Source: Macrostomum lignano
Lineage: Eukaryota
Length of the DNA stretch: 64,000 bases
Assembly: GCA_002269645.1 (NCBI GenBank)
Contig: NIVC01003730.1
Location: 15,945 to 79,944, forward strand
Direction: 5' to 3'
Shown: one piece after another, positions 3,979 to 62,173 of the stretch
Layout: each line of letters begins with the position of its first letter
Position numbering within the stretch: position 1 is the first letter of the stretch
Translations under genes and position numbers: made by a program
Notes under the pieces: model-generated
Told to the model about the DNA's origin: nothing
Databases searched by the model: none
The model's input: only the letters and a program-made list of their open reading frames with translations

Positions 3979-4026
<48 letters not shown>

Positions 4027-4061
4027 GGATAGACGGCAGACAGACAGACAGACAGGCAGGC

Positions 4062-4106
<45 letters not shown>

Positions 4107-4108
4107 GG

Positions 4109-4139
<31 letters not shown>

Positions 4140-4180
4140 ACGGATAGACGGCAGACAGACAGACAGACAGACAGGCAGGC

Positions 4181-4220
<40 letters not shown>

Positions 4221-4259
4221 GGATAGACGGCAGACAGACAGACAGACAGACAGACGGAT

Positions 4260-4295
<36 letters not shown>

Positions 4296-4458
4296 GGATA
4301 GACGGCAGACAGACAGACAGACAGACAGACAGACGGATAGACGGCAGACAGGCAGACAGACAGGCAGACAGACAGACAGACAGGCAGGCAGACAGACAGA
4401 CAGACAGACGGATAGACGGCAGACAGACAGACAGACAGACAGGCAGACAGACAGACAG
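3744..4458. repeat. (GACA)n microsatellite with GGCA/GATA interruptions
   Basis: Directly visible. Confidence 0.97.
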
Positions 4459-4680
4459 AGAACCAGGGTATCATTCAGTCTGAATAAGTTCGCTCAGCAT
4501 TATAACAGAATTTGAGCACAGCTCAGAGTTTTTACCACAGCAGAGTTCATTTCGCCCAAGTCAAATATTTATTTACAACTCAGTTTCGCAGGCCGGAAAT
4601 TGCGCCAAAGGCGGTGCCTGTTCCCTATAGTGCCCCTCCGCTGAGCACTGCGTGTGTTTAAGAGCGGGGCCGGCAATCCC

Positions 4681-13752: not shown

Positions 13753-14444
13753 CATTCGATGGTCAAGGCAAGTGCAGCGCAGTCGTGCATCCATGGACTG
13801 TGGAGGCGTGGCTAGCGCAGCTTCCAGCGGTCGACTGGGCGGCAGGGCGCTCGCAGTCAGGGGTGCTCTGGTCAAAGGATGTCATCTCATCAGCAGCTCA
13901 TTGCAGCTGCAAAAGTCCTGCTGCTTATCGGCTGCCTGTTACGAAACCACTGAGGATTGGCTCTCCATCGGATACATCCCTGGACCTTGAAGTGGCGCAT
14001 TCGCCAGTTTTTTTCATCTGTTGGGCCGTTCTGAATGCTGCCTCTGAACAAGGGCGACTGGCGACCCTGTTCTTCAACAGCACGCTGCGAGTTTCACAAA
14101 CAGATGAGCTGATTAAGATGAGAAATCTTTCTATTTTGCTCACGAATATGGATTATGGAGTATATGATATAGCTCGTATTTGCTAAATATACAATAGTTG
14201 ACTGCAATAATATAGCCTTCTATGCAATCTAAAGCATTCACAATGTTGCTTTGAATTGTGGAAAGTATAATTATAAGTTTCTTTTTGCAAAAAAATCAAT
14301 ACAATTGCTGCATTGCATTCATCTGTTTTTTTATTTAAAAAAATATAAATAACGCTAAAATGTTTTTACTACTACTAAGCAGAAAGTAGAGTAAACTGTC
14401 GTGTTGTGAAAATTAGCTGGAGTGGCCTATCTAGTGTTTATAGT

Positions 14445-14927
14445 NNNNNNNNNNNNNNNNNNNNNNNNNNNNNNNNNNNNNNNNNNNNNNNNNNNNNNNN
14501 NNNNNNNNNNNNNNNNNNNNNNNNNNNNNNNNNNNNNNNNNNNNNNNNNNNNNNNNNNNNNNNNNNNNNNNNNNNNNNNNNNNNNNNNNNNNNNNNNNNN
14601 NNNNNNNNNNNNNNNNNNNNNNNNNNNNNNNNNNNNNNNNNNNNNNNNNNNNNNNNNNNNNNNNNNNNNNNNNNNNNNNNNNNNNNNNNNNNNNNNNNNN
14701 NNNNNNNNNNNNNNNNNNNNNNNNNNNNNNNNNNNNNNNNNNNNNNNNNNNNNNNNNNNNNNNNNNNNNNNNNNNNNNNNNNNNNNNNNNNNNNNNNNNN
14801 NNNNNNNNNNNNNNNNNNNNNNNNNNNNNNNNNNNNNNNNNNNNNNNNNNNNNNNNNNNNNNNNNNNNNNNNNNNNNNNNNNNNNNNNNNNNNNNNNNNN
14901 NNNNNNNNNNNNNNNNNNNNNNNNNNA
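14445..14927. other. Assembly gap (483 N)
   Basis: Run of N. Confidence 1.
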
Positions 14928-15283
14928 CCTGCACTCGGCTAGGCGGACGGAACATTCACTTTGAACCATCAACGGTTGACGCTGTTGTTGGACTTCCATG
15001 TTTTCGATTCTAGGCTGATCTGTTAAGCATTGTTTTGTGTGAATTTTTTAATGGCTATACAGTGATGCGTGTACTTTCGACTGCCCATTTTTATGATTTA
15101 AAGGGATTAGCCTTTTTATTATACCTGACCACCTGGGCTTAGTAAGGTGCTTTTTTCGAGGCAGTTTCACAGTTCGTTCCTGCACGAGCCGAGTTTTTTG
15201 TAAGCGCGGCGTCAATTTTTACCCCTATCTATAGATAGCAAAATATTTCAAATTTCAAGTTGATAAATAAAGTCAACCCCATC

Positions 15284-18600: not shown

Positions 18601-18661
18601 AACCAGTTCCTTTGTGGAACAGGGCCAGCGTTAGTAAGAGTGCTATACTGTTTGCGGTCAT
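15602..18661 (-). CDS. Secreted VWDE-like protein (signal peptide, EGF, D8C/UMOD-type Cys domain, degenerate VWD, C-terminal EGF), 1019-aa single ORF
   Basis: Signal MTANSIALLLTLALFHKGTG; EGF 'CLNGATYDAIYDRCECTPNYFGYRC'; 'DPC...WYRVQSPWGNRMVEGC...CGG...VRILKC...LYFL..P..HSYC' (D8C-like); 'FSDPFV' (VWD-start-like); 'CPNDCGKNGLCVAGACECRLGFTGRGC'. A possible donor GAG|GTTAGT at 15619 means the 3' end may continue. Confidence 0.75.
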   Translation of the reverse strand: MTANSIALLLTLALFHKGTGFPCLNGATYDAIYDRCECTPNYFGYRCETAFASHDPCQRQSELPVIEDLEGKHRPGAGRNSTSSSSMRQPASELFSTIKPQWYRVQSPWGNRMVEGCSSGVKDSDCGGRAAYVLHDVVVEKKSKSRSLSRARAYRVWSQLRTCHLADETFYPVRILKCTQSVTLYFLLPLPKTHSYCIGDEADPSENILIPKKPILQLHNDYGDERFTCGVYGSQYKSRYTIRFVLTGRDGDQKSIKRCNVKEHDIPPNCEGNCTFNCPWYHIAKPGENIYGSNIVCTVKPVNLSVPEVSSNIHSFTFFINFTHGEHTIRPGKPVELCISTRNIPTTQKITFSVSVARKIRYRKDRTDIAVLSNNKNSNESVCEFASSNSRSRLQRKVCMKLVLYNQDHEGKFVFGLKKSEQLSEARINISYKSSADGIFTRNGNSNVPSLLAFERFESLHLKVDLRTLASGPQNYLHIFSDPFVKPVGGIYKENSTYVLRAKRGESDVYVAMRNKVLPYEVQVLITRPQSVVQDGPDESVVTRVAVRYNYMTIIISGNANENNGELTHRVHCKAPNGSKTLNEDTMRADSLCDVRRNVNKIDSTLDVVRIHLQFYGTIIYAWKFRAHLEAKSSCAHRFIMSLREMRNRACRGGVHPVGDRKEFALDVTVIPSMYDIPGNVDGLMYATSQSEAVKYIVKRPSENLFSSKYTHAARKAKSQDLIDQPFEIMKICHCENVEKQSAKSGCLVDVTNIERTKREIPITARVEEKNHIPTAADPQVMNETFSSVKNKISSKEAQQFCSDFLSVQMVLRNYSLSLCSGHSDHQIGANYAAQFEFLCIRYALTLNTYQFAETLLNSMLDVCRKDIGYNASEVRSNSRVLKDLERDICPNDCGKNGLCVAGACECRLGFTGRGCENRTEQLEAIPTTISIPNQHFVCASENCSSTLLLVSPMLKSTKADCLIRQVVPSAEERPAKQSWKVAAVFATGSVMVCNLTDIHSWLKTENRLYAAIEVSRYR

Positions 18662-22437: not shown

Positions 22438-23873
<1,436 letters not shown>

Positions 23874-24300: not shown

Positions 24301-27300
24301 CTACGGAGCTTCCAGCCAAAGCCGCAGGAAATATTTGTCTCGCTCCTTCTCGGTTCGGACAAACTCGTGTGGGATTGGTGGCAGAGTTCGCTCGACCTCC
24401 TTCACCGCACTGTAGGGACACCCTGTAAGCGGGGTGACAGGGGAAACACTGGAGTAGCAAGGGGAGACGCTGGAGTAGCAAGGGGAGACATTGGAGTAGC
24501 AAGGGGAGACACTGGAGTAGCAAGGGGAGACACTGGAGTAGCAAGGGGAGACACTGGAGTAGCAAGGGGAGACACTGGAGTAGCAAGGGGAGACGCTGGA
24601 GTAGCAAGGGGAGACGCTGGAGTAACAAGGGGAGACGCTGGAGTAAGCGAGGGAAGACACTGGGGTAGCAAGGGGAGACACTGGGGTAACAGGGGAGGCA
24701 GTGGGGTGTCAGAGGAGGTAGTGGGGTGTCAGAGGAGGCAGTGGGGTGTCAGAGGAGGCAGTGGGGTGTCAGAGGAGGCAGTGGGGTGTCAGAGGAGGCA
24801 GTGGGGTAGCAGAGGAGGCAGTGGGGTAGCAGAGGAGGCAGTGGGGTAGCAGAGGAGGCAGTGGGGTAGCAGAGGAGGCAGTGGGGTAGCAGAGGAGGCA
24901 GTGGGGTAGCAGAGGAGGCAGTGGGGTAGCAGAGGAGGCAGTGGGGTAGCAGAGGAGGCAGTGGGGTAGCAGAGGAGGCAGTGGGGTAGCAGAGGAGGCA
25001 GTGGGGTAGCAGAGGAGGCAGTGGGGTAGCAGAGGAGGCAGTGGGGTAGCAGAGGAGGCAGTGGGGTAGCAGAGGAGGCAGTGGGTGTCGGATAAATTTC
25101 GTACAGAAATTACCTGTTGGCTCCGCAGGCCCAGTCGTTGCGTTGCCCCTGTAAAACGGCAGCTCGACATTTTCGTAAACATCTCGAACATACTTATCCT
25201 CATCAAAGGGTATTTTCTGCAAAAGAAAGAATTCTATCAATATATCATTGTGATTGATAACAACTGTGAGCAGATTGATAACAACTGTGAGCAGATTGAT
25301 AACAACTGTGAGCAGATTGATAACAACTGTGAGCAGATTGATAACAACTGTGAGCAGATTGATAACAACTGTGAGCAGATTGATAACAACTGTGAGCAGA
25401 TTGATAACAACTGTGAGCAGATTGATAACAACTGTGAGTAGATTGATAACAACTGTGAGCAGATTGATAACAACTGTGAGCAGATTGGTAACAACTGTGA
25501 GCAGATTGATAACAACTGTGAGCAGATTGATAACAACTGAGAGTAGATTGATAACAGCTGTGAGTATGTGAGTCGATTGATAACCACTGTGAGTAGATTG
25601 ATAACACCTGTACTGAGTATGTGAGTAGATTGATAACACCTGTAAGTAGATTGATAACACCTGTACTGAGTATGTGAGCAGATTGATAACAACTGTAAGT
25701 AGATTGATAACACCTGTACTGAGTATGTGAGCAGATTGATAACAACTGTGAGCAGATTGATAACACCTGTACTGAGTATGTGAGTAGATTGATAACAACT
25801 GTGAGCAGATTGATAACACCTGTACTGAGTATGTGAGTAGATTGATAACAACTGTGAGCAGATTGATAACACCTGTACTGAGTATGTGAGTAGATTGATA
25901 ACAACTGTGAGCAGATTGATAACACCTGTACTGAGTATGTGAGTAGATTGATAACAACTGTGAGCAGATTGATAAAAATTGTGAGCAGATTGATAACAAT
26001 TGTGAGTAGATTGATAAAAATTGTGAGTAGATTGATAAAAATTGTGAGTAGATTGATAAAAATTGTGAGTAGATTGATAAAAATTGTGAGTAGATTGACA
26101 GCGGCACTGTCCCTTCAGTTTCGCAGCATAAGGACCAATCCCAAAAGCAATTTCTGCCACGGGAAAATCAGCAGGTAAATATCGAGTAAGAACAAACTTT
26201 GCAATCATTTATTTGTCTCCAATTTTTTTTGCGTCACCCACCTGTCTGATTGCGGTGGCGAGCTGGTGTAGAAACAGCGCCCATCTGGGCCTGTAGTAGC
26301 CAGCCAGCAGGCCGCTGTACATCCTGGCCGCGTAGTCCTGTATGGTGTTCGGCCCGGGACCCCAGCACGTCAGCTGATTTCGAATATTGAACTCGTACAG
26401 GCCAATCTCCGAGGGGCTGGCGGCGAATGACTTGGCGCTGTTGATGAGTCTCTGCAGCAGGAAGCGCTCGTCAGTCTGCAGCAGCTTCTCCATGCGGTCA
26501 AGAAGTCCCAGCATTGTTGCGCCCGAAGCCCTGGTTGGAAACGGTTGGTGACTGGAAACTTCATTACACACCGTTAATGTCACCTTCTACAGTCCTTCAC
26601 TAACTGACTTACTCAACGGCTGTTGCATTCTCAGTGTGAGCAGCCTGTTTGAGCACAGTGTAGTACTGGTGAAACCGAATCTGCAGCATCTGTCTTGTGA
26701 GGTCCACTTGGTCGTAGCTGGGCGGAGGGAGTTTGCGGATCCAATAACTTTCATGACGCCTGCAGTTCACAGATAAACCTGTCCCACCGACTCACTTCAG
26801 CATCGCATTGTCGGACTGATTCGTCGCGATCAGCAGTCTCCAAGCGGACTCAACCAGAGTGACATTGTAGTTCGCGTTCTCGCTTAGAGATAAGGACGGA
26901 CGAAGCACCAGGACAGGGGTCAGCATGCCAGTATGCGGCGTGTTGTATACTGTGGACTGGTGGAGTGCATGCAGGCTGTCAGTAATGCAAAAGGTTCAGT
27001 TTACATTTTACAAACAATGAGAATGCCGAGATGGATATGCAATGTAGATAGATCCAAGATAGATCCAAGATAGATCCAAGATAGATCCAAGATAGATCCA
27101 AGATAGATCTAAGATAGATCCAAAATAGATCTAAGATAGATCTAAGATAGATTCAAGATAGATCCAAGATAGATCCAAGATAGATCCAAGATAGATCCAA
27201 GATAGATCCAAGATAGATCCAGTATCAAAGATATCAGTATCAGTATCCAGTATCAAAGATATATATATATATATATAAGGCAGATGACAATGACGATGGA

Positions 27301-30300
27301 CAAATGACAGTGGACACAATACTGCAGTAGACACATGAAAGTGGACACATGACAGCGGACACGTGACTGCAGTAGACAGATAACAATGGGCACATGGCAA
27401 TGGACACAGCCGTAGACACATGACAGTGGAAACATAACAGTCGACACACAACAGTGGACACATGACAGTGGACACATGACAGTGGACACATGACAGTGGA
27501 CACATGACAGTCGAAACATAACAGTCGACACACAACAGTGGACACATGACAGTGGACACATGAACAGTGGACACATGACAGTGGACACATGACAGTGGAC
27601 ACATGACAGTCGACACATGACAGTGGACAAATGATAGTGGACACAATACTGCAGTAGATAGACGAAAGTGGACACATGACAGTGGACACATGACAGTAGA
27701 CACATGACAGTGGACACATTGCAGCAGACAGATGACAGTGGACACATGACAGTGGACAAATGACAGTGGACACATGACAGTGGACAAATGACAGCGGACA
27801 CAATACTGCAGTAGACAGACGAAAGTGGACACATGACAGTGGACACATGACAGTGGACACATGACAGTGGACACATGACAGTAGACACATGACAGTGGAC
27901 ACATGACAGTGGACACATGACAGTGGACACATGAACAGTGGACACATGACAGTGGACACATGACAGAGGACACATGACAGTCGACACATGACAGTGGACA
28001 AATGGTAGTGGACACAATACTGCAGTAGATAGACGAAAGTGGACACATGACAGTGGACACATGACAGTAGACACATGACAGTGGACACATTGCAGTAGAC
28101 AGATGACAGTGGACACATGACAGTGGACAAATGACAGTGGACACAATACTGCAGTAGACAGACGAAAGTGGACACATGACAGTGGACACATGACAGTGGA
28201 CACATGACAGTGGACACATGACAGTGGACACATGACAGTGGACACATGACAGTGGACACATGACAGTGGACACATGACAGTGGACACATGACAGTGGACA
28301 CATGACAGTGGACACATGACAGTGGACACATGACAGTGGACACATGACAGTGGACACATGACAGTGGACACATGACAGTGGACACATGACAGTGGACACA
28401 TGACAGTGGACACATGACAGTGGACACATGACAGTGGACACATATTGCAGCAGACAGATGACAGTGGACACCTGACAGTGGACAAATGACAGTGGACAAA
28501 TGACAGTGGACAAATGACAGTGGACAAATGACAGTGGACAAATGACAGTGGACAAATGACAGTGGACAAATGACAGTGGACAAATGACAGTGGACAAATG
28601 ACAGTGGACAAATGACAGTGGACAAATGACAGTGGACAAATGACAGTGGACAAATGACAGTGGACAAATGACAGTGGACACAATACTGCAGTAGACAGAC
28701 GAAAGTGCACACATGACAGTAGGCAAATCAAAGCGGTGAGTGAAGCTTGCGCAGACTTCAATCTGCAAATTTGATAAAAAGGCTTCAACCAACGCTGCTG
28801 CAGCCTCACCAACAGTCCCTCCCACGCATCCAGCAGGTTGCGATCTGGACGCCCGTACCGCCGCCTTGCGTAGTCTCGGATCCACTCAGCCAGCGACTCC
28901 GGCTGCTCGGCCCTCCAGTTGAACTCCATCACCAGCTCGTACACAACTTCGTTCTGCCCGATTCCTTCCGGCTGGATTCCTGTGCCGAGCATGTTTCCAG
29001 GGAACTGACGCCGCAGGCCAAAGGGCCCGTGCTGGCCAAAGTTTTGCAGCTGGCCGTACATGGCGTTGTTACCGCCAAAGTTGTGCAGGGCTGTCCACAC
29101 GAAATTGTGTCCGAAGAAGCCGTCCAACTGTTGGGCCAGGTTGACCGTTTCGCCCCACAGCTCCATCACTAGTAGATGAGTCTGCATTGAGTAGGGCAGG
29201 CACTTGACAGATCAGTGACACATTGAGTCAAAAGTCGAATTGTTAAACCGCTCACCATGTTGATGGGCTCAAAGAACGCCTTGGCCCGATTGATCGTCCA
29301 AAAGTCGGCGGCGTTATTTAAAAACCAGCTTTGCAAGACCCTGGGATATGGCCAAGTAAAAAAGAGTCTTTTCTCAGTCGATGACCGCAGCGGCTTCTCT
29401 ATCGACGTGAAAGACTTACCAAACGCCCTGGAGATCGGCACGTAAAAATCCATTAAGAATTGCAGCGCTGACCGCCCTGATGTAGGCCGGGTCACTGAAG
29501 AGAGTTGCCGGGAGAAACAATTAATTATCTATAATGAGCGCTCTGTTGCTTGTAGGGGTGTTCGGGCTTCCATTTTTCCGGGTTTGGGGTTTACCTCGAA
29601 CCCGACCCCGAACTTTCCCTGAAAGGAGAACACTTCATCTCAGGCTTTCTACGAGCTATTGTGCTTTTTCCACGAGTGACGACTGAAGGGAGTTACTCGT
29701 CCTGAGGTACATCTAGTAGTCTACGCTCGTACTCATTTGCAGTCCTGGCTCCTGAACTCCTATTTATAGTCATCGGCTAGCAATCTCAAGTCTTCACTCC
29801 TCTCCTCCCTATAATTTGACTCCTCATTCTTAAGATCTTAGCATTGACTTTAACATCCACTTATCCAACTGTTTGCCAACTTGGGTTCAAGCTGTCATTG
29901 TTAGCGCAACATTCGAGTGTAGCTTAATGAAGAATTGGAAAATAAAGGTTGAACACCCTTGAATTTTTAATTAAAAACTTTTGCATCTACCGCAAAAACA
30001 AAAATAAAGTGATTTTTTAAATCCACAAGCATAGTCCAGCGGCCAGCCGGAATGCATAGATTCATAGATTTCATCCGTAGAACCATACGTTTGTAATTGA
30101 AAACTTAAATTCAAGCATTATTTATTTCGGTTTTTCGAAGTTTAAATTTTCGCCTTTTTATACTTAAAAAGCGTTACATAACGACAGTAGGAGAAATCTA
30201 TTTTTAAAATAGCTAAAGTCTTCTTTCCTTTGAACCCGAAAATCCCGAAAACCCGACCCGAATACCCTACCCCGAACACCCCTAGTTGCTTGTGGCAACA

Positions 30301-40819: not shown

Positions 40820-43030
40820 TTATCGGTGCTTAGCCTGATGAGCCAGCTGCTGCTGCTTAACAATGGCCGAGGCGGACAACTGCGGATTCGAGCCCAGGAC
40901 TACCGGAGCAGCCAACTGTTGCTGCAACAAACTCTGTTGATTAAGATGATGCTGATGCTGCATCAGAGAGTGATGATGATGCTGCCTCTGCTGCTGCTGG
41001 GGAAGCTGGGCCTGCATAGCGACCCGGTGCTGGGCCAGCCGAGCCCGGCAGTGAGCGCCGATGCCGGACATCGGGGCCAGGGTGCGCCTGCGGGCCCAGC
41101 CCAACAGGGCCAGGCCGCTACCAGCGCCGCCATCAGCTGTGGAGCAGCCTGCCGCAGAAGTCGCAGCCGAGGCAGCCCGACCGCCGCCGCGTCGAATCAG
41201 CAGAAGAGGCTGCGGCGCGCCGAGACAGCGAAACTGAGCGCCAGCGACGGCCTCCGCAGGCTGCTGCTGGTCGGTGGGCAGCGGCACCGGAGTGGGCGCG
41301 GGCGTGGGGAATTCCAAGAAATCCTCGTCAGACGAGTACGCCTCCGGATTAGCCGGTGGAGGCGGCGATGAGGAGGAGGAAGCGGCGGACGAGCACAGGG
41401 CGGTGGCAGTGGGGATGAGCACAACTGGCTGCTGCCGGAAGAACATCTGCAGCGCCGGCTGAGTTTGCTGGTGCTGGTGGTTCAGCAGCTGCGGCGAGCT
41501 GCTCACTGCTGGCAGCGGGCCCGCGGCTGCCGACACCGGCGCGCCGGGTGGAGCCACGGCGGGCGGCTGTCCGGATTTGAGGCTCCGGCTGGCCTGCAGC
41601 AGGGCATCGAACGGGCGGGTCCTGCCGGGCACTGCGCGCCGGTCTCGCAGGCTGTGCTTCTTGCAGGTCAGGGAGCGGACGCAGCGCTGGCCGGAGTCGG
41701 TGACTACGCCGCAGTGATTGTCCGGGTCAAAGGCGCGGTCTCGGAGCGGCAGGATGCGCGTTTTGGTGCCGCCGCTTTGCCCGCTGTTGCTGCTGGTGTG
41801 GCTGGGCTGATGCATCAGCGGCTGGCTTGAGGCCACGCCGCCAAGAGGCGACATCGCCACGGCGGTTGTGGGTGTCGCCGCACCGCCTTGCTGACCGTGG
41901 CGATGCTGCTGATAGCCAGACGAAGCCAAACTCACCAGCGCAGCGGCGCCAGCAGCAACGGCCGATGCGGATTCGTCCTCTTCGCGGATTCGAACCACCG
42001 GAACCGCATCCTCTTCCGGTTCGAGCGATACGCTGACGGGAGCCTCCTCGAGCAGGCCAGGCAGCCGCGGGGTCTACGAGAGAGCGGGAGGGCGATTCTT
42101 TAAACTGGGCTGTGGGCGATTCTTTAAACTGGGCTGCAGGGCGATTCTTTAAACTGGGCTGCAGGGCGATTCTTTAAACTGGGCTGCAGGGCGATTCTTT
42201 AAACTGGGCTGTAGGGCGATTCTTTAAACTGGGCTGCAGGGCGATTCTTTCCAAACTTTAATCTAAGAGATTATCAGAGCCAGTTAAGGACCAGGTGAGT
42301 TATATGAGAATCAGGAGACAACTCAGCTACACAACAGCCAGCTCAATACACAGGACAGGTAAGACAGGAAAGCAACCTGGGAGTCCTCCGCAGCCATCGG
42401 GCTGGCCCAGATTCCTCCGCTGCTGCTGCCGCGCCCGTTGCCAACCTCAGCATCTTCATCATCGTCCGCCGCCTCCTCGTCATCCTCGGCCACCTCCGCG
42501 TCTTCCTGCTCGTCATCTTCATCTTCGACTGCGGTTGTCGCCGACGCCACGGAAGTTGGCGCTGTGGTGCCGCCCTGCAGAGCGGAGGCCAAGTGGCCAG
42601 CGGCGGCGCCGCCAGCCCTGCTAGGAGTCGATGGCGGACTCGTCAGCATCAGCGGCGAAGTTGACAGCAGCGCCGCCTGGGTCAGCGTGGGCGAATCTGC
42701 CATCATGGCAGCTGCCGCCGCCGCCGCGGCTGCCGCAGCAGTGGCGTCGCGTTTCCCGCGGACTTTCCTTCGGCCTTTGCTGTGCGCGCTGTCCAGGTGC
42801 CTGAGCAGGGTGATGAGGCTGGGGAATCTCAGCGAGCATAGGCGACAATCGTGAGCAACAAAATCTCTGCTCAACGGAGTCTGGCTGAGCAGCGGCATCA
42901 GGTCGGACTGGAGCAGCGGCACGTCTGGACTGCTGGGCTCCGGGTTGGATGGGCATCGAAGCTGGCCACTGCGCTGGGCTTGGCCGATGGCCGACACCTC
43001 GCCCTGGAGCCAGCTGCTCCAGTCTGCCAT
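40820..43030 (-). CDS. ATXN7: Ataxin-7-family SAGA deubiquitinase-module subunit, ~635 aa. Exons 43030-42377 and 42073-40820.
   Basis: N-terminal ZnF 'DLMPLLSQTPLSRDFVAHDCRLC...LLRHLDSAH' and SCA7 domain 'FDPDNHCGVV...CVRSLTCKKHSLRDRRAVPGRTRPFDALL'. Phase-0 GT-AG intron is consistent. May be an ATXN7L paralog type. Confidence 0.85.
42090..42250. repeat. 25-bp tandem repeat in the ATXN7-like intron
   Basis: Period 25 (42121, 42146). Confidence 0.93.
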
Positions 43031-43735
43031 GCTGCTTCGGCCTCTTGTAGTGGATTGTTGCTATGCACTTTGGCTTTGAATGCTGGTGCAACTGCAAGTC
43101 TGCAATGGACTGCTAGGTTTCAGTGTTGCACTGCGGCTGATTTCATTTGGGGCCAACTAATAGCAGTAAAAGGGCAATAAATTTTTTTAATTGGATAGGA
43201 AATCACTTTGAATTATATTATTACAATGAATGTATTGTATTGCTGAATGTATTAAATATGTATATACTTATATTGTATTGCTGAATGTATTAAATATGTA
43301 TATACTTATATGTAGACTAATACTAAATAATGAATGATACAATTGATATGAAATATATGATATATTTAATCATACATGTGTGATATACACCACCCAATCC
43401 ATTTGGCCAACATGGATCACTGAAGAGAGGAGAAATGCAATTAGAAAAGGAAAAAAATAAAATAAAAAAGTTACAATTAGAACCAACAAAGCTTTTATTT
43501 TTGTTAAAACTATAAGCTTGAATTTTCACAATTAATGTTAATTTAAAAAGCTATATAAGTATATATTTGCTATACAAAAATAAAAAGAATAATATTATTA
43601 GCTAAATAGGCCCTAACAGATATAGATAATTTTAAAGAATTCTTAAATAGTCCACTTTTGATATTTAGAACCTTACTACTTAAAATGCTTTAGGATTTAA
43701 TGTAGATAACTTAGAAATTTTTTTATTTATTAGAA

Positions 43736-44536
43736 ATATATATGGCTCATTCCATATAAGCATGGTCGTAACATGACAGGTTATTTTTACTTATAAAATG
43801 AAATCTAATAATAGAATATACTAAACCAATATTTTAAATGAAAGATTATTTTGTCTAGAATATATTTATAGAGTTTCATATAGATATCATCATTAGTATA
43901 GATGCTATTAAACCTTAAATGACACTTATGGTCGTAACGACAGGATTTTTGACATATAGAAACTAAAAGGTAAAAGTCTTATAACATTTTTCATTTTTGA
44001 TATTTTGCAATACATTTTTAAAATTTGACTAAGAACATCTTTAGAAATCATACTCTTTTATTAGAATATATAAACTCAAAAGGCAACAAAGATACAAAAG
44101 AAAAGGCAGCCTTATGGTCGTAACATTATGGTCGTAACATATTTTTTTCTGTCAATTCAGTAACTTTGAGGTACTAATACATTAAAAATATAATAGATTA
44201 TTTGGTCACCAATGCTTTTATCTGATGATGCAAGTACTATACTTTTATCTATAGTTTGTTTCAACCTTCAAAAGCTTTCTATTTGTTTTTAAAAGGTACA
44301 AAATCTTAATGATGTCTTTTGCTTTGAAAAATGTCCAAATTTTTACAAAAATGACTTTTTGCCAATTGATAACATACTAATCCAATATTTTACCATTCCT
44401 TTATTCTTAGATTGTATATATTGCACAATATAAACATTTGGTAAAAAATAGGCTAATTAGGCAATGGCAAGCAAAAATATTGACTTTTTTCTATTTTCCA
44501 AATATGTCCATCTTATATGGAATGAGCCATATATAT
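43736..44536. mobile_element. AT-rich TIR element (~800 bp), superfamily unassigned
   Basis: 25-bp inverted repeats ATATATATGGCTCATTCCATATAAG (43736-43760) / CTTATATGGAATGAGCCATATATAT (44512-44536); internal repeated ATGGTCGTAAC. Confidence 0.6.
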
Positions 44537-46438
44537 ATATAGGCTAGATAGATAATTGGTCTATTGTCTAAATAAGACAAAAATTAAATTATGCATACCT
44601 ATCAATTAATATACTTATTATCAAAATTTTATTTTATTTTATTGTAGCAACAAAAGTTAAAAGGCTAAAAAAATTATCTCTAGGCTAATAGTTCTAGTAA
44701 GTACTAGTAGTTAGGCCTTAATTGATTGAAACAAAAAAATTATAAAGCAAATCAACATACATAGCCTTGGTTTAAGCCGAATGCTTGGCTTAAAAAACTT
44801 ATAATGGCATATAATACTAGGCTATATAGGCACATAAGATATTTTTCAACTAGATATAGGTAGGCATAGGTCTAAAAATTGAAAACCATGATCAGCTGAT
44901 CAATAAATCAAAATTAAACAAGAAAAATTTTCGATGCAAAAATTCAAGGACTAGGGTCTAGCCCCAGGGCCTAGACTAGACCTAAGCTGATAGACCCTTT
45001 CCCTCGGGCCTCGGCCTAACTAACCTACAGAAGCCTTTAGACCCTAATCCTCTTCTACTAGACTAAGAATTGGCAATACAGGCCGACCCTAAAAATAATT
45101 TAGTATGGGCCTAAATAATGTCCATAAACCATAATGCATAGTGTGGAACCTAGCTAATGAAAAAAGCAATGAATATAGAATGTAACATTCCGATCAGGAG
45201 CATAATGATGTTGTGGCATCGGCATGACAAATGGGATTATTGTTCAAGGATGCAGTTTGCAGAAGCTGTACTCGCAAACCGTTTTCTAAGAAAAATATTC
45301 ACGATGTACCGAACCGAGGTTGAAGTTCCTGAAGAATCACTTTAGTTAACTTTATAATAATTTATCATGAACAAGAACATTATCAAAAATCTTCAGCTGA
45401 GCCATCATGCAGCTACATCTATCTAGCATTTTTGTCATGAGTTTATAGTATATAGCTATACGAGAGTATATCTCGTACATACGAGCGTAGCGTTGCTATG
45501 GTTCCATGGCAACTGGGTCCATGGGTCCATGCCTGGAAAAAATTTTCCAGGTCCATGAGGTTGGTGCAGTGGCGCCCCGCACTTTGCTCTAGTTCAGAAA
45601 TTGTGGGAGGGCTAAATTTGAGTCCGATCGAGAGACTACAATTATCAGTATTCAACCACAGCAGCAAAAAGGATTTGTATAGGTCTGAACCTGCACATGC
45701 ATGTACATGCATGTGGCCGTGGGCATACATATACAGCACATGCAAAAATGCCAAGCGAAGCGACCTAGTTAATGCCGAACATACGGCCTTGCAAACCTAG
45801 CAGCGTCCTGTGAAACATTCTGGGATGCAAGTGTAGGCCGCATAACAGTATATATAGTGGCCCGAATGTGAACCGAAGACTAAATTGGTTGAGGATATAA
45901 TCTGGGAGTTACGCTATTTACATGTATATGTACAGTGTATAAGGCTAGATCCGGTAGTACAGGTGGCTCGGCAGCGTCTGCGTCAAGCTTGGCAAAGATA
46001 GGAGGTGGACTGTGGAGTGAAGCCGAGGCCACGTACTCAAAATGAAGTGTGGACTCCTGGTACTGCGCACGCACTGTGGCCTGGTACATGTACATTACGA
46101 GTACACTCAAAGTGTGGCGCCACTACATCATGTCTTAAATAAAATGGCGCCCTACAAAAGACGCTTTCCCCGATAAAAAACTCCGGCTACGCCCAATGGA
46201 GCACCGTGAATGGTCCATCTGACTGTCGTTTCTGGTGGCCCTAATATTACCAGCCGAAACGTCAAACGCCTGAATATATGAGCTGTGTGAGTTATTTTTC
46301 TAAATTTACTTAAGCACTTATAATGCATAGTAGGCAGAAATTCCGCCTCCCAGCGTGGAAATCACACGTTCGCCCAGCACGACAGCTGAGGTTGGCCTGG
46401 CCCTCGCGACGTAGCAATGCCCAGATGGTCCATGGCGC

Positions 46439-48893: not shown

Positions 48894-50065
48894 GTGAGAT
48901 TTCCAAGCCATACTGCTTCCTACCATAGCACAGGGTGAGATTTCCAAGCCATACTGCTTCCTACCATAGCACAGGGTGAGATTTCAAAGCCATACTGCTT
49001 CCTACCATAGCACAGGTGAGATTTCCAAGCCATACTGCTTCCTACCATAGCACAGGGTGAGATTTCAAAGCCATACTGCTTCCTACCATAGCACAGGGTG
49101 AGATTTCAAAGCCATACTGCTTCCTACCATAGCACAGGTGAGATTTCCAAGCCATACTGCTTCCTACCATAGCACAGGTGAGATTTCCAAGCCATACTGC
49201 TTCCTACCATAGCACAGGGTGAGATTTCAAAGCCATACTGCTTCCTACCATAGCACAGGGTGAGATTTCCAAGCCATACTGCTTCCTACCATAGCACAGG
49301 TGAGATTTCCAAGCCATACTGCTTCCTACCATAGCACAGGGTGAGATTTCAAAGCCATACTGCTTCCTACCATAGCACAGGGTGAGATTTCCAAGCCATA
49401 CTGCTTCCTACCATAGCACAGGGTGAGATTTCCAAGCCATACTGCTTCCTACCATAGCACAGGGTGAGATTTCAAAGCCATACTGCTTCCTACCATAGCA
49501 CAGGTGAGATTTCCAAGCCATACTGCTTCCTACCATAGCACAGGTGAGATTTCCAAGCCATACTGCTTCCTACCATAGCACAGGGTGAGATTTCAAAGCC
49601 ATACTGCTTCCTACCATAGCACAGGGTGAGATTTCCAAGCCATACTGCTTCCTACCATAGCACAGGTGAGATTTCCAAGCCATACTGCTTCCTACCATAG
49701 CACAGGGTGAGATTTCAAAGCCATACTGCTTCCTACCATAGCACAGGGTGAGATTTCCAAGCCATACTGCTTCCTACCATAGCACAGGTGAGATTTCCAA
49801 GCCATACTGCTTCCTACCATAGCACAGGGTGAGATTTCAAAGCCATACTGCTTCCTACCATAGCACAGGGTGAGATTTCCAAGCCATACTGCTTCCTACC
49901 ATAGCACAGGTGAGATTTCCAAGCCATACTGCTTCCTACCATAGCACAGGGTGAGATTTCCAAGCCATACTGCTTCCTACCATAGCACAGGGTGAGATTT
50001 CCAAGCCATACTGCTTCCTACCATAGCACAGGTGAGATTTCCAAGCCATACTGCTTCCTACATAG
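48894..50065. repeat. 40/41-bp minisatellite (GAGATTTCCAAGCCATACTGCTTCCTACCATAGCACAGG[G]T), ~29 copies
   Basis: Period 41 (48901, 48942), with 40-bp and TTTCAAAG variants. Confidence 0.97.
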
Positions 50066-50775: not shown

Positions 50776-53081
50776 ATGGCTAACGAAATGCAGTCTTCAG
50801 CTGACCAAGAAGAATTTAATGAAGAGAAGCAACTTCCCGCAACTGCCATGACTGTCATTAGTGGCAATCGTCACCTGTTATACTTTTGTCACCTGTGCAG
50901 CTTTGCTGGTGAGATTTGGTTAGATTTGGTTAGATATCCGAAATCACATTTCTAATAGATCTGAGTTTCTCGACCATTTTTTCTCTGTATTCTAGTGGGC
51001 TAGTGGTCTTTAGCCACCAGAAATATCTGCAACATAGTTCTGTATACAGTTGCAGATGTATGTCTTTGTCTGCACAACTGTGTCGTCACCACAGATACTA
51101 AAATAACTAGATGGGCCACTCAGGCACAAATACTTAGTAAAACTGCTTTCTACTTTCAGTTCAGTAGCAAAGAAGAATACATAAGCTATTTTATAAAAAT
51201 AAAGGCAGCTGAAATGACCTTGATAAGTTTTGAAGCCCAAGCTTGCAGCTAGCCGTAAACAACTTGCTAATTGGTTCAGCAATAATGTACATTAGCCACT
51301 GAAATGTACATGCCAGCTTTAGGCTGGAATTAAAAAAAACAATAAAAACTGGCGCGGGGCGGGGGTAGTGTGGAAAGGCGCGGGTGGAGGGTTTAAGTTT
51401 GGGGTAGAAGCCAATAAATGAGCCTTGTCTTCAAGACTACATTAAAATGCTTCAGTTTAACTTACTACTGAACTGAAAGTAGCTTGCGCGCAAATGTGCT
51501 GAGTGACCCATCTATTTATTCTAGTGTCTGTGATCGTCACCGACTCACCTGGCATTGAGTCAAGCGTATTAGCTTTTATTTTCTGTTTGTATAATTTCTC
51601 GGATCTCCATAGCAAACATTGCAAGAAGCGAAGCGCCAGGCTAGGTGGGAACAGAATACATTTAAACAAAACACTTTAATCTAGGAGACTGGTCTCATCT
51701 TGAAGGAATTTCAATCCGCTAATTGCCTGGTTGAATTCTGTTTTTGCCAATATTTATTTAATGAAAGGCAGAAACACTGCTCTGTCTGGTGCGGCAAAAT
51801 TAGCAGCAGAATTTTTCTTTCGACGACTGGTTTAACTGATACAGTATTTGTCTTCAATTTGTAGAAAATAGCCATTTTTCTGCAACAAAAAACCCTTTCC
51901 TCACTCATTGGTGCCCGCAGGAGACGCGCACAATGCAAAACTAAACAGAAGTAGATCCGCTTTGTTTCAATCCATTTATCATGATTGCACAACGCTTCCT
52001 CCGATTGCACAAAGCTCACTCAACTCAAAGCAGTCACGTGATTCGATCTCAGCTGCCCCACACATCTTCCCAACCCTGCCATCACACGTTCAAACGCAGC
52101 ATTCAACAACTTTACCTCCCAGGCGCCACTCAGGAGGCCTTCAAGGAGCACATGGCCACTCACTACGAGTTCCAATGCCCGGCGTGCGACTACAAGTCGC
52201 GCACGGACGGCCGGCTGAGGCGCCACCTAAAGGACTTCCACTCGGAGGTGCCACCGGACAGTTACTCGGGCAAGGCTGCGCCGTCTCGCCAGAAGCTCCA
52301 CCGCTGCCGCCAGTGCAGCTTCGTGACGGACGACAGGTCTGAGTTCTGGCAGCACTCGCGCAGTCACATCAAGTCGGAGAGGCAGCTCGAATGCCCCAGC
52401 TGCCCGTTCGTCACTGAGTACAAGCATCACCTCGAGTATCACATCCGCAATCACCTGGGCTCGAAGCCATTCAAATGTCCGAAGTGCAACTACCAGTGCG
52501 TGAATCGGTCTATGCTGAATTCGCACATGAAGTCGCACACGAACGTGTACCAGTACCGCTGCCTGCACTGCAGCTACGCCACCAAGTACTGCCACTCCCT
52601 CAAGCAGCACCTGCGCCGTTTCGGACACCGTCCGGCAGCTGTGCTGAATGCCGATGGCAGTCTGCCGAAACCCGGAGCCCAGAGCCACTCTGCATCGGCC
52701 AGGAGGATCCAACAGCCACAGCCGCCGCCACCGCCGCCACCTCAAGCACCGCCTCCGCCACTGCTGCCGCCGCCACCGCCGCTGCCGCCGCTGTGCCCGC
52801 CGCCGCCGCTGCCATTCCTCGGGCCGATCCTGCCTTTGCATGTGCCGCTGGATTTGACTGCAAAGCCGCCAGGAGGAGGCGGCGATAGTCACAGTCAGCC
52901 TTCGATAGTTCAACGCTGCGAGTGCCATTTCTGCGGCATCGCGTTCAATGAGCCGCTGATGTTCGACCTGCACATGGGCTACCACGGCTTTGAGAACCCA
53001 TTCAAATGCAACCGCTGCGGCTGCGAGGCCCGCGACCGACTGGAGTTTTTTGTCCACCTGGTGAGCAGCGCCCACTGCTGA
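50776..53081 (+). CDS. hb: Hunchback C2H2 zinc-finger transcription factor, ~363 aa. Exons 50776-50908 and 52123-53081.
   Basis: Central cluster '[67 protein letters not shown]'; C-terminal pair 'C..CGIAF...MF.LHMGYHG..NPFKCN.CG'; PLDLT motif. A phase-1 splice completes finger 1 ([10 protein letters not shown]|[13 protein letters not shown]). A further upstream exon is possible via the acceptor at 50747. Confidence 0.93.
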
Positions 53082-53899: not shown

Positions 53900-54168
53900 T
53901 GCAACCGACAGCTCAGCCGCAGCTACTGCGCGGCGCATCTGAAGGCTGCGTACACGGCTGTTCAGTCCAAAAGACTGGGGGTCTCCACAAACACCCTCAA
54001 TTACCCCAGCTAATGCATATTACAGATGGGTGAACTGAAGCGATGCAGAGTTAAGTGGTAAGTGTCTTGCTGAAGGACACAAATTGTTCCAGTAGGGATC
54101 GGGAATCGAACCCCCGACCTTTAAGTCGTGAGTCTAACGCTCTAACCACTAGGCTAAAACCCCCCTCA
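53900..54168 (-). mobile_element. tRNA-derived SINE, copy 3
   Basis: Minus-strand TAGCCTAGTGGTTAGAGCG A-box and GGTTCGATTCC B-box (54103-54112). Body matches copies 1 and 2. Confidence 0.85.
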
Positions 54169-54169
54169 C

Positions 54170-55433
54170 AACCCTCACTAGACTACAACCCTTCACTAGG
54201 CCAAAACCCCTCACTAGACTACAAACCCTCACCAGACTACAACCCCTCACCAGACTACAACCCCTAACTAGACTAAAACCCCTCACTAGGCTACAACCCC
54301 TAACTAGACTACAACCCCTCACTAGGCCGAAATCCCTCACTAGACTACAACCCCTCACTAGGCCAAAACCCCTCACTAGGCCAAAAACCCTCACTAGACT
54401 ACAAACCCTCACTAGACTACAAACCCTCACCAGACTACAACCCTCACCAGACTACAACCCCTCACCAGACTACAACCCCTCACCAGACTACAACCCCTCA
54501 CCAGACTACAACCCCTCACCAGACTACAACCCCTCACCAGACTACAACCCCTCACCAGACTACAACCCCTCACCAGACTACAACCCCTCACCAGACTACA
54601 ACCCCTCACCAGACTACAACCCCTCACCAGACTACAACCCCTCACCAGACTACAACCCCTCACTAGACTACAACCCTCACCAGACTACAACCCCTCACCA
54701 GACTACAACCCCTCACCAGACTACAACCCTCACCAGACTACAACCCCTCACCAGACTACAACCCCTCACCAGACTACAACCCCTCACCAGACTACAACCC
54801 TCACCAGACTACAACCCCTCACTAGACTACAACCCTCACCAGACTACAACCCCTCACCAGACTACAACCCCTCACCAGACTACAACCCTCACCAGACTAC
54901 AACCCCTCACCAGACTACAACCCCTCACCAGACTACAACCCCTCACCAGACTACAACCCTCACCAGACTACAACCCCTCACTAGACTACAACCCTCACCA
55001 GACTACAACCCCTCACCAGACTACAACCCCTCACCAGACTACAACCCTCACCAGACTACAACCCCTCACCAGACTACAACCCCTCACCAGACTACAACCC
55101 CTCACTAGACTACAACCCTCACCAGACTACAACCCCTCACCAGACTACAACCCCTCACCAGACTACAACCCTCACCAGACTACAACCCCTCACTAGACTA
55201 CAACCCTCACCAGACTACAACCCCTCACCAGACTACAACCCCTCACCAGACTACAACCCTCACCAGACTACAACCCCTCACTAGACTACAACCCTCACCA
55301 GACTACAACCCCTCACTAGACTACAACCCTCACCAGACTACAACCCCTCACTAGACTACAACCCCTCACCAGACTACAACCCCTCACTAGACTACAACCC
55401 TCACCAGACTACAACCCCTTACTAGACTACAAT
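54170..55433. repeat. 17/18-bp minisatellite (CAC[C/T]AGACTACAACCCCT), ~70 copies, abutting the SINE head
   Basis: Period 18 (54483, 54501), with regular 17-bp variants. Confidence 0.97.
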
Positions 55434-59149: not shown

Positions 59150-59674
59150 GGGGGTCTTTCTCGAAAGCAACTTACGATCGACCATAGACGTAAGTTGGGT
59201 AAGCTACACTTACGGGTTGCTCGAAGGGCTCGCAAGTTAGCTATGCGTAAGATTGATCGCAACTTTACGAGTTCGTAACTTTGCGCAAAAGACTGTTTCT
59301 CGAAACGTTCGTATGTCTATGGTCTTTCGTAAGGTTGATCTTAACCCTATGACTGCTCGGTATCAGTCGTAAGACGCACTTGAGCACTAATCGCATAGTA
59401 CGTGAAGCTTTAGTCAAGCCAAGTCAAGTTAAATTTTATCGAAGGTGGGTCTTTCTCGAAAGCAACTTACGATAGACAAAGTAAAGATATTTACAGATTT
59501 ATGACCATAGACATGCAACTTTTCGTTTCAGATACGACTTACGAACAGCGTAAGCCACGCAAAATCTAAGTGAGTTTTGAGAAAGCTTCTTACGAGCAAA
59601 CTTACGCTACACGTAAATTTCTTTCTTACGATCTAACTTACCATAGAACTTACGTGAGTTTCGAGAAACACCCC
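59150..59674. mobile_element. PIF/Harbinger-like MITE (~525 bp)
   Basis: Ends GGGGGTCTTTCTCGAAA...TTTCGAGAAACACCCC flanked by CAG/CAG (a 3-bp TSD if one homopolymer indel is allowed). An internal third TIR-like copy lies at ~59447. Confidence 0.6.
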
Positions 59675-59877
59675 CAGTAGCACCAAACACGCTGGATCTA
59701 CTCTCGTATTTCTGTTAAAGGTCTGTTAAGCGTGCTTGTAGGACTGTATTTGCACGGGTTTGAGTTGCTTAAGTCTGTCTCTAAGTGCATCGTGTGATAT
59801 TATTTAACATGAAGCTTTTCTTGGAATGTGCTGAATTCTCGATAACTCTGTCCATGTGATTCCATAGAGCCTTGAGT

Positions 59878-62173
59878 TCATTCCCATGGGGTAACAGCAT
59901 TCTCTGACTTTTCCCACGGCGTGACAGCATTCTCCGGGTTGTCGGCGGTCTCCCACGGTGTCACCTGATTATCGGGCGCAGTGACGACTGCTTGGAAAGC
60001 AGCACCTGAACTGCCAGCCGCCGCAGACTCCCATGGAGTCACGAGATTCTCGGAGCATTAGAGGCCACTGCCGCGCTCTCCCATGGTGTTACATTGTCAT
60101 CTGGCTGAAGTTCCTGCTTCTGCATCAGATTTTCCTGCTGAAGCTTTGAGGATGAAGGGTTGCTTGGGATTGCGGCCGTTTCCCACGGAGTCACAGGATT
60201 CTCCGGATTTCCCGCTGTCTCCCACGGCGTCACCTGGTTGTCTCCGGCCTCCCAAGGCGTGACCTCATCGGTGGTGCCTCGGTCAGCATAGTTGTAGGAA
60301 GTGGAAGCTCCACCACCGTTTTTCAAAATAGAGGCCTGCTGCTGCTGCTGCATCTGCACCACAACTACCGGGTTGCTGCGCATCGGCCGGTTGCCGTTGC
60401 TGCTGTTGGTCTCCGTGCTGCTCACAGTCTCGGTGCGGTTCTTGCTGCTGGAGCCGCCGCCTCCTGCCTGCTGCCGCTTGACGAAACTGAAAGCGTGCGC
60501 CGCCGCCGCCTTCTTCGTCTTGGCCAGCTCCTGTCCGTGTTTGTCTGTAGACGCCTGCAGAAGGCATTTGTAGTCCTCGGATCTGAGAAATCTCTGATAG
60601 CTGTCCTTCTTCATCAGCATGTAGATGTGCTCCTGCGCCTCCTCGAAGCTGAATCGCCCGGCTTCCTGCATGCCCCGCTGCGTGGCCGTCATCGTTCTGG
60701 AGTCGATGTTGATCTCGGACGGTGCGCCCGAGGCCAGGAACTCGGCGAAGATGCTGTCCATGCGAGCGTGCAGCTGGCTGACTGGCCCGAACTTGTAGTC
60801 CTGCACGGCCAGCCAGAAGCGCAGGTTCTCCGAGCTGAACTCGCGGGTCAGGAAGTGCCTGAAGTACTCCCGGCCGGCCGGATCGCGCAGCAGAAAGTCG
60901 AAACTGGTGCCCCATAGTTTCACCTGCCTTGGCGTCAGGCCGCTCTCCCCCGTGCCCTGACAGGAGTGGAATGCGGCTTGATCGTCCTGCAGCCAGGGAG
61001 ATCCGGTCTGCACTGCCGGGGTCCCAGTCTGGTCCTCGCTGCCCGAAGCTCCGGTAGCCGCAGCAGCAGACGACGCCGCCGCTGCTGCAGCAACTGCTGC
61101 CTCAGCGGCAAATGCTGGGCATTCAAAAACCAGTCGAACGATTTAGTCAGCTCGTAGCAACTCACAATGATGTCCATTGACTTGTGAATAGCCGTCGCAA
61201 TGTTGTTGGAGGTGCAGTTCGCGCCAGTGCTCTGCAGGGCGGCCTCCTGCTGCTGGAGCTGCTTCTCCCTGCGCTGTTGCATGTGCTGGTCATGCTGCTG
61301 CTGCTGCTGCTCACGCCCGCGGGCCATCCGACGCTGCATCTGGACGTCGTTAAAATGGCGCTGCAGCGGATGATCGACCGGGTTCATATAGCCGGGAGGC
61401 GGGCGGTGCACTCGCCAGTAGGCTCGCTCCTGAGTGGAAAGTTTGAAGCAAACTGGTTGTTCTAAAGAAGAGTTATGTACCTGGATTACAAACTTACACC
61501 AAACTTTTACATCATTACACTTCAGCTAGCTAAGCCAATATCGAACCGGGCAATTCCAGACCCGCATCACCTGCATTTCCAGCACCATTCGGTCGTTCTT
61601 CTTCCTCTCCCTGGCCAGTTTGAGTTCCTCCTCGGCCTGCAGCGCAATAAACTGCCACCGATCTGCCAGCAGCTTCTGCAGTCTGGTCAGTGCAGTCTTC
61701 TCGTACTCCTCGAAGCCGCTCTTCTGCTTGCTGCGAATCATTCGCTTTGTCAGGTAGATAGCGTAATCAACGTTGTCCGGCCTACCGGACACGGACAGCC
61801 AGAAGTAGGGCGCCTGGAAGCGGTACAGGCTGGTCGAATCGTCCTTCACTAGCAGCGAGTGGCCCTCGGCCAGCGGATAGACATAGCCGTACACAGCTAG
61901 GAGGTGGGCAATGTGCGCCGCTTCCTCGGTGGCGTCGCCAGCGGTAGTCAGGCGGTCTCGAATCCAGCCGATGAGGTCGCTGCCGCTGACTGCGGCCGGA
62001 ACGGTGGACAGGAACGCCTTCTGAGCTTTAAAGGTGACACCAGTGTCTGGATGTTGCATCAGCTCGACAAGGTGCTCAAGTCGGCGCACTACGGACAAGT
62101 GTCGATACACGTCAGCGGTAGTCAGCGGAGCCTGCTCGACAAACTCGTTGCCATGGGAAACGGATTTTGCCAT
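59878..62173 (-). CDS. R7-family regulator of G-protein signalling (DEP-DHEX-GGL-RGS), RGS9/RGS11/EAT-16-like, with a VTPWE-repeat tail. Exons 62173-61571 and 61429-59878; 1-bp frameshifts at ~61118 and ~60051.
   Basis: DEP/DHEX 'GSDLIGWI...LYRFQAPYFW...DYAIYLTKR...EEYEK...Q|ERAYWRVHRPPPG'; GGL remnants 'FDWFL...SPWLQDD'; RGS box 'WGTSFDFLLRDPAGREYFRHFLTREFSSENLRFW...EINID...MKKDSYQRFLRS'. Confidence 0.9.

Follow-up and report, generated by a model that had tools for sequence, protein, structure and literature searches.

A tail of eight V-T-P-W-E motifs in an R7 RGS protein of Macrostomum lignano, a candidate cis-acting affinity adapter for G-alpha

An eight-motif tail in a flatworm R7 RGS protein

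PDE-gamma and the C-terminus of RGS9-2 reportedly serve as affinity adapters for RGS9, as Martemyanov, Hopp and Arshavsky are said to have described in 2003. PDE-gamma carries the peptide VICPWE, and its Trp70 enters a pocket of activated G-alpha-T that is lined by W207 and I208 of switch II and by L245 and I249 of helix alpha3 (bioRxiv 10.1101/2020.04.01.020651). The same insertion of Trp70 was found in a crystal of G-alpha-t/i1 with PDE-gamma and RGS9 (bioRxiv 10.1101/2020.04.01.020651). For GPR158, binding of G-alpha-o is reported to go through its VCPWE motifs (review, PMC9027133); the motif goes unmentioned in a 2012 JCB paper. We analyzed a 64-kb stretch of DNA from the flatworm Macrostomum lignano (contig NIVC01003730.1; the whole stretch is referred to as the window), whose minus strand holds a gene for an R7-family RGS protein with DEP and DHEX domains, a degenerate GGL and an RGS box. 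From the sequence of this stretch, the original prediction had proposed that the protein carries, in cis, an amplified motif of the PDE-gamma and RGS9-2 type. The core of that proposal held; its assignment to the RGS9/11 type, the assumed Cys ancestry, the supposed uniqueness and the frameshift, probably an assembly artifact, needed correction. Its statements on the vertebrate systems agreed with the sources, namely VICPWE in PDE-gamma, whose Trp70 plugs the switch II/alpha3 pocket of activated G-alpha-t, the C-terminal VICPWE of RGS9-2, and the VCPWE motifs of GPR158, for which binding to G-alpha-o is reported (PMC9027133).

Six-frame translation of the 64 kb yielded exactly eight VTPWE motifs, all on the minus strand between 59881 and 60263 and split four and four by a frame break (Table 1); no further [VILC][TCS]PWE was present in any frame of the window. 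The predicted motifs, their flanks, their coordinates and the TGA at 59880-59878 were all correct, as was the RGS box upstream of them (Pfam RGS, E 3e-33). Motifs 1-4 share one frame and motifs 5-8 sit in the neighboring frame. The array packs the eight motifs into 128 residues, predicted to be disordered, within a post-RGS tail of 236 residues, and all of the tryptophans in that tail (8/8) fall inside motifs. When set against the core [VI]-C-P-W-E, the residues V, P, W and E were retained in 8/8 copies, with Thr in place of Cys. Motif 8 forms the extreme C-terminus, the place that the motif occupies in RGS9-2 and other R7 RGS proteins.

At the DNA level, 11/11 non-degenerate sites of the motif were identical across the eight copies. 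The four synonymous third positions carried 4, 4, 3 and 2 different bases, and the mean pairwise difference was 2.79 of 4, which is near saturation. Invariant non-degenerate sites combined with near-saturated third positions indicate that the copies are old and that selection on the peptide has preserved every one of them; the tail is therefore an old motif array maintained by protein-level selection, in line with the earlier claim that conservation lies in the protein. A DNA satellite or translated minisatellite was rejected, as Tandem Repeats Finder reported no array over 59500-60700, just a CAG run at 60336-60357, and the motif third positions are near saturation. The block DNQVTPWETAGNPENPVTPWE (60179-60242, motifs 2-3) was 83% identical in DNA to DNQVTPWETADNPENAVTPWE (59910-59973, motifs 6-7), and the history of the array includes at least one old two-motif block duplication.

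The fold was modeled with AlphaFold2 on A0A1I8GYV1 (P0001), a second M. lignano copy of the protein, from an input alignment of 37 orthologues. Residues 463-658 had a predicted local distance difference test score (pLDDT) of 31-37 without secondary structure, and the region equivalent to the linker before the motifs scored 31-44, also without secondary structure. The tail is thus predicted to be disordered, and none of the motifs was docked by AlphaFold2 onto the folded domains of A0A1I8GYV1. The RGS box had a pLDDT >90; the box of the window protein matched the RGS7, RGS6 and RGS9 boxes in the PDB.

Distribution of the motif and placement of the protein

When [VILMF][ACTSG]PW[ED] was scanned in the 120 best R7 RGS matches and in 150 cluster representatives, the motif was always C-terminal to the RGS box and never before it. 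In molluscs, annelids, a nemertean, chelicerates, insects and a sea urchin it usually fell no more than 15 residues from the C-terminus. Vertebrate RGS6 and RGS7 had no motif. Vertebrate RGS9-2 (P0150; 941 bits to PDB 2PBI) had one, at its end …EKEVICPWESL. Single motifs were likewise found in molluscs (…NVVAPWEGSE, within the last ~15 residues), annelids (…NVVAPWDD and …VVAPWEESKST), the nemertean (…EVAPWDDESLTV), horseshoe crab and spider (…LVAPWELED and …VVAPWETEG) and sea urchin (…LITPWEEDTS). Insects had 1-2 motifs with a conserved end, …ICPWEDEESCKVDTPFVKTYATLGYL; other representatives of arthropod type had 2-5; decapod crustaceans had 6-7 copies of [VI][CA]PW[ED] dispersed along a long tail. 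Cestode and monogenean flatworms had none, the M. lignano paralogue had two (…EVAPWE…TVTPWEDG), and the eight of the window gene were the highest count in the scanned sample.

The typical spiralian form was VAPWE, with single cases of ITPWE and VTPWD elsewhere. Position 2 of the motif appears to tolerate small residues (A/C/T/S), and Cys is seemingly not a defining residue in the R7 family. The description of VTPWE as a Cys-to-Thr variant was not upheld, as the spiralian state is usually VAPWE and the ancestral position 2 was not necessarily Cys. Taken together, the comparison points to [VI][ACT]PW[ED] as a C-terminal trait that is old within the R7 family, with one copy in most invertebrates. 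Multi-copy tails seem to have evolved more than once, and the flatworm and decapod expansions look independent.

In arthropods, the conserved RGS7 end followed the pattern …[DN][IV]CPWEDEE[SN]CK.{3}PFVK[TK]YATLGYL (decapods P0022, P0043, P0062, P0086, P0100 and P0110, and insects). This end resembles PDE-gamma's own C-terminal end in layout, with CPWE, about 15 further residues and a hydrophobic …LGYL terminus, and it may represent a PDE-gamma-like module more complete than just the 5-mer. A homologue search with the flatworm tail alone (230 residues) gave 2103 word candidates, none of them at E <= 10.

The full-length protein matched the solved structures of RGS7 (326 bits, E 4.5e-96) and RGS9 (289 bits, E 5.6e-85), and the RGS box by itself scored 147.5 bits to RGS7, 146.7 to RGS6 and 121.1 to RGS9. 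In a quick neighbor-joining tree without support values (71 sequences, 423 columns), the M. lignano copies grouped with the R7 proteins of parasitic flatworms and adjoined an invertebrate 'RGS7-like' clade, outside both vertebrate clades. Membership of the RGS9/RGS11 branch, as originally predicted, found no support on either count: the bit scores favor RGS6/7, and the tree puts the protein in a flatworm and invertebrate clade. 'Invertebrate R7' is the safe label on these sequence comparisons.

The arrangement had been thought undescribed in an RGS protein. A full-text literature search for CPWE-type motifs turned up the GPR158 review, a methods section on PDE-gamma and a preprint on TRAF6 motifs, and no paper describing such motifs in an invertebrate RGS, and 'undescribed' is provisional, as subscription papers lay outside its coverage. 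The arrangement is not unique, since decapod RGS7 has 6-7 motifs; multi-motif R7 tails are already in public databases in several lineages, and the mechanism considered below extends a known one.

Gene model, frame breaks and surroundings

The gene has two exons (Table 1). The model of exon 1 agreed with UniProt A0A1I8IKU6 from MAKSVSHGNEF on, and removal of the intron joined ...MVLEMQ to ERAYWRVHRPPPG, as in A0A1I8IKU6, A0A1I8GYV1 and all orthologues. After one base was added at each of two frame breaks, the repaired model was 718 residues long.

Table 1. Coordinates of the R7 RGS gene and its motif array, in positions of the window
Feature	Positions	Strand	Details
Exon 1	61571..62173	-	ATG at 62173 to GT donor after ...LEMQ; donor reads cag/gtgatg
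DEP	about 61817-62041	-	in exon 1; Pfam DEP E 9.5e-10 on open reading frame (ORF) 61526-62173
DHEX (most)	exon 1	-	Pfam RGS_DHEX E 2.6e-27 on ORF 61526-62173; end of DHEX in exon 2
Intron	61430..61570	-	141 nucleotides (nt), GT..AG
Exon 2 with stop	59878..61429	-	DHEX end, Gln-rich linker, GGL-like remnant, RGS box, disordered linker, eight-motif tail; two 1-nt frame breaks
GGL C-terminal remnant IIVSCYELTKSFDWFL	61124..61171	-	aligned to paralogue IIACYEISKAFDWFL
Second frame break (1-nt insertion needed)	60937..61142	-	overlap of two open frames; downstream of DWFL (61124-61135), between GGL remnant and RGS box
RGS box (GTPase-activating (GAP) domain)	60567..60905	-	Pfam RGS PF00615 E 3.3e-33, residues 37-149 of ORF 60039-61013
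Disordered linker, about 100 residues	60264..60566	-	RGS box to motif 1; contains poly-Gln (CAG) run 60336-60357
VTPWE motif 1	60249..60263	-	GTC ACG CCT TGG GAG; GTTDE-VTPWE-AGD
VTPWE motif 2	60219..60233	-	GTG ACG CCG TGG GAG; AGDNQ-VTPWE-TAG
VTPWE motif 3	60180..60194	-	GTG ACT CCG TGG GAA; NPENP-VTPWE-TAA
VTPWE motif 4	60078..60092	-	GTA ACA CCA TGG GAG; QPDDN-VTPWE-SAA
Tail frame break, 1 nt	60042..60057	-	within 'tgctccgagaatctc'; 'gct ccg aga atc tc' expected as 'gct ccg gag aat ctc'
VTPWE motif 5	60028..60042	-	GTG ACT CCA TGG GAG; (P)ENL-VTPWE-SAA
VTPWE motif 6	59950..59964	-	GTG ACA CCG TGG GAG; APDNQ-VTPWE-TAD
VTPWE motif 7	59911..59925	-	GTC ACG CCG TGG GAA; NPENA-VTPWE-KSE
VTPWE motif 8 and stop	59878..59895	-	GTT ACC CCA TGG GAA, then TGA 59878-59880

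In the R7 subfamily (RGS6/7/9/11, EGL-10 and EAT-16), the G-gamma-like (GGL) domain is the one that binds G-beta-5. Pfam GGL (PF00631) was matched neither by the window protein nor by any flatworm orthologue; a conserved coding remnant, …CYELTKSFDWFL, aligns to the end of the GGL. The remnant is coding, because its alignment to the paralogue shows four synonymous codon differences. The Pfam GGL was missing in all flatworm R7 RGS matches (P0001, P0002, P0006, P0011, P0014 and P0023), and nearly all other R7 matches have it; just a short …CYE..K.FDWFL remnant was recognizable in the flatworms. An Ala-rich run, AAVAAAAAASSAAAA, lies at about 61040-61100 on the minus strand, in the interval from the GGL remnant to the RGS box.

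The frame break in the tail, previously placed at ~60051 as a 1-bp frameshift, is confined to the interval given in Table 1, because the first frame ends at the TGA at 60039-60041 and the second is closed upstream by the TAA at 60058-60060. The top database matches were two M. lignano proteins, A0A1I8IKU6 (P0121) and A0A1I8GYV1. The former equals the repaired model, including all allele-specific residues, except for one skipped segment; the latter is the second copy, with about a dozen residue differences (about 98% identical) and the same eight motifs. Both proteins cross the tail break in a single frame (…SNAPENLVTPWE…), and their reading SNAPENL requires one base more than the window sequence holds. 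Since A0A1I8IKU6 represents the same allele and reads its tail in a single frame, the break is specific to this assembly; it probably reflects one G lost from CCGGAG in the assembly and not a feature of the gene. A micro-intron at this place was rejected, as SNAPENL in A0A1I8IKU6 calls for an extra base and not for a splice.

The second break may sit in a T5 run, at about 61126-61130, or in the TTT of 'gcatttgcc'. Both UniProt models bypass this break via a 65-nt GTGAGT..AG 'intron' that removes VSCYELTKSFDWF…, and because both skip over it, the break is present in the other assembly as well. The 65-nt segment was rejected as a genuine intron: it cuts out a stretch whose counterpart in the paralogue, ACYEISKAFDWFL, is conserved and shows four synonymous differences. 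Owing to this 'intron', the public models A0A1I8IKU6 and A0A1I8GYV1 lack the end of the GGL domain.

A decaying pseudogene, from whose locus a once-functional tail is no longer expressed, would account for two frame breaks within 2.15 kb of coding sequence and for a break after DWFL that both UniProt models also work around; we regard it as improbable. Each break changes the length of a short homopolymer by a single base, a pattern that we infer to be typical of long-read consensus errors, and A0A1I8IKU6, the same allele, keeps the tail in frame. No stop codons or further damage were found, the RGS box still scored E 3e-33, and the second copy A0A1I8GYV1 retains all eight motifs. Pseudogene status of this copy is less likely than an assembly error.

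Elsewhere in the window, minisatellite arrays were dense, with periods of 4-122 nt and up to about 100 copies, at sites including 1-1082, 3747-4459, 5271-6020, 7401-7864, 9619-10823, 24439-26098, 27286-28720, 48894-50065 and 54168-55432. Long ORFs that overlap the arrays, such as 27253-29187 and 24749-26107, are probably not genes over their whole length. Pfam matches in neighboring ORFs (22482-23873 (+), 40820-41998 (-), 51981-53081 (+), 15602-18661 (-) and 27253-29187 (-)) included a complete tubulin (Tubulin and Tubulin_C), an SCA7 zinc-binding domain protein, a C2H2 zinc-finger protein, a 1019-residue ORF that contains a teneurin-like EGF domain, and an alpha-N-acetylglucosaminidase (NAGLU) fragment. 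AT-rich stretches were seen at 14001-15000 (GC 0.19) and 43001-45000 (GC 0.27), compared with a window mean of about 0.48 GC.

Possible function of the tail and comparison with known systems

By analogy with the vertebrate systems, we lean, with the odds a little on its side, toward the reading that the eight VTPWE motifs are an expanded ancestral C-terminal R7 motif acting in cis as a PDE-gamma-like affinity adapter for G-alpha. The array would have expanded from a single C-terminal [VI][ACT]PW[ED] of an ancestral R7 RGS, equivalent to the VICPWE of RGS9-2 and PDE-gamma. The Trp of each motif would slot into the effector pocket that switch II and alpha3 form in an activated subunit of the G-alpha(i/o) type. 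This pocket adjoins the surface that meets the RGS box, and with about 100 flexible residues upstream of the motifs, the RGS box could bind the adjacent switch surface, so that the tail would work as a PDE-gamma-like affinity adapter in cis. Eight equal sites on a flexible tether may raise the probability of capture and rebinding (allovalency), and one RGS molecule might hold several G-alpha-GTP at once or mask the effector face. The expected outcome would be that G(i/o) signaling is shut off faster and more locally. Of the functions considered, the likeliest appears to be that of a multivalent, PDE-gamma-like element that acts in cis as an adapter or a trap for activated G-alpha.

Several observations weigh against it. 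The likeness to PDE-gamma appears confined to a 5-mer, without statistical backing beyond it: phmmer searches of every PDB sequence (E up to 10), with the flatworm tail and with a crayfish tail as queries, did not retrieve PDE-gamma. The Cys of the vertebrate motif is Thr in the window protein. The gene has two frame breaks in this assembly, and the one after the GGL remnant is echoed in both UniProt models. Vertebrate RGS6/7, the nearest vertebrate relatives by score, are without the motif and the parasitic flatworm orthologues have lost it; the motif is therefore dispensable for core R7 function. Finally, the gain from eight copies is conjecture, because a given G-alpha pocket holds one motif at a time.

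A bolder version, which we hold to be doubtful, treats the tail as a multivalent G-alpha-GTP binder. Several G-alpha subunits would be held per R7 RGS through their effector pockets, and the tail would serve as a local sponge and effector antagonist that feeds its own GAP domain serially. Such arrays would have arisen independently in flatworms and crustaceans from a single ancestral R7 motif, a module that would have turned up later in vertebrate RGS9-2, GPR158/179 and PDE-gamma.

Docking of a partner other than G-alpha has a slim chance of being the function. Kinesin-1 light chain is one such partner, with the array serving transport or localization of the RGS complex in neurons or cilia. 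Its W-acidic cargo peptides are short, combine Trp with acidic residues, lie in disordered regions, often occur in several copies and bind with low micromolar affinity (PMC6214655). The window tail is predicted to be disordered and has Trp followed by Glu in every motif, and arthropod versions are strongly acidic (e.g., ICPWEDEE). However, in W-acidic motifs that have been validated, Asp/Glu flanks Trp on both sides and Leu/Met occupies -2 (EWD; TNLEWDDSAI; PMC6214655), and this consensus failed in the window, where -1 is Pro and -2 is Thr in 8/8 motifs. Moreover, G-alpha binding has been linked to V(I)xPWE in PDE-gamma and, within the same family and at an equivalent position, in RGS9-2.

Contacts within the molecule and with its subunits regulate R7 RGS proteins, and the long flexible tether would permit the motifs to bend back onto the RGS box, DEP/DHEX or a G-beta-5-like partner as an autoinhibitory or assembly element. 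We give this possibility even less weight, as no motif was docked on the folded domains by AlphaFold and the whole tail had a pLDDT of 31-37. CPWE-type motifs are not known to bind RGS or G-beta-5.

The minimal site of a proline-directed kinase is Thr-Pro, and Pro-directed sites, including Thr-Pro phosphorylation, or TRAF6-type sites (PxExx[aromatic/acidic]) could in principle affect RGS stability or signaling cross-talk. Least probable of all, this reading draws on the CPWE motif of GPR179 (EVCPWEVTE), flagged as a TRAF6-consensus match (PairK preprint), and on a fit to PxExx[FYWHDE] in 3/8 window motifs, but the other 5/8 fail the pattern, as do RGS9-2 (PWESL-end) and PDE-gamma (PWEAFN), the pattern does not need an invariant Trp, and Thr-Pro phosphorylation cannot be the conserved function when orthologues have Ala or Cys for Thr.

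With the cis adapter as the preferred reading, the locus bears on how the motif is viewed. V(I)CPWE is familiar from vertebrates (PDE-gamma, RGS9-2 and GPR158/179), where it tunes the way in which RGS proteins locate activated G-alpha, and the comparison points to an old, R7-wide feature that appears to have expanded independently on at least two occasions, by a factor of eight in Macrostomum and of six to seven in decapods. Should the motifs bind G-alpha, the natural series of 0, 1, 2, 7 and 8 copies would offer a test of valency against GAP efficiency and signal duration. M. lignano is amenable to experiment through RNA interference and transgenesis.

The window protein has a paralogue in the same species, BOX15_Mlig015244 (P0002), with the same architecture, 54-60% identity and a tail ending …GEVAPWETEAASEKKPDSSTVTPWEDG. 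The paralogue differs in having two motifs (VAPWE and VTPWE) and an intronless gene, with no equivalent of the intron at 61430-61570. Four copies encoding identical BOX15_Mlig015244 proteins were present in GCA_002269645.1 (NIVC01003529, NIVC01002059, NIVC01003709 and NIVC01001111). Decapod RGS7 (e.g., Cherax, Portunus and Procambarus) shares the domain order and has its motifs just in the post-RGS tail. However, the decapod motifs are spread over 400-500 residues and finish with the extra conserved end given above for insects, whereas the flatworm array is compact (eight in 128 residues), uniformly VTPWE and terminates exactly at the last motif.

Among the vertebrate systems, RGS9-2, the striatal splice form, is like the flatworm protein an R7 RGS; its long, disordered extension at the C-terminus ends in V-I-C-P-W-E-S-L, and with respect to RGS box and C-terminus its motif is placed as in the flatworm protein. 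It differs in having one motif instead of eight and Cys instead of Thr, and the flatworm protein overall is no closer to RGS9 than to RGS6/7. PDE6 gamma shares the core [VI]-x-P-W-E, and its Trp70 acts together with the RGS9 box; unlike the flatworm tail, it is a separate small protein that works in trans with a single motif, and a further C-terminal segment also blocks the PDE6 active site. GPR158 and GPR179 resemble the flatworm tail in carrying repeated motif copies on a disordered cytoplasmic tail and in being components of R7 RGS signaling complexes. In these two, however, the motifs have Cys instead of Thr and belong to an orphan receptor anchoring RGS7 and not to the RGS protein.

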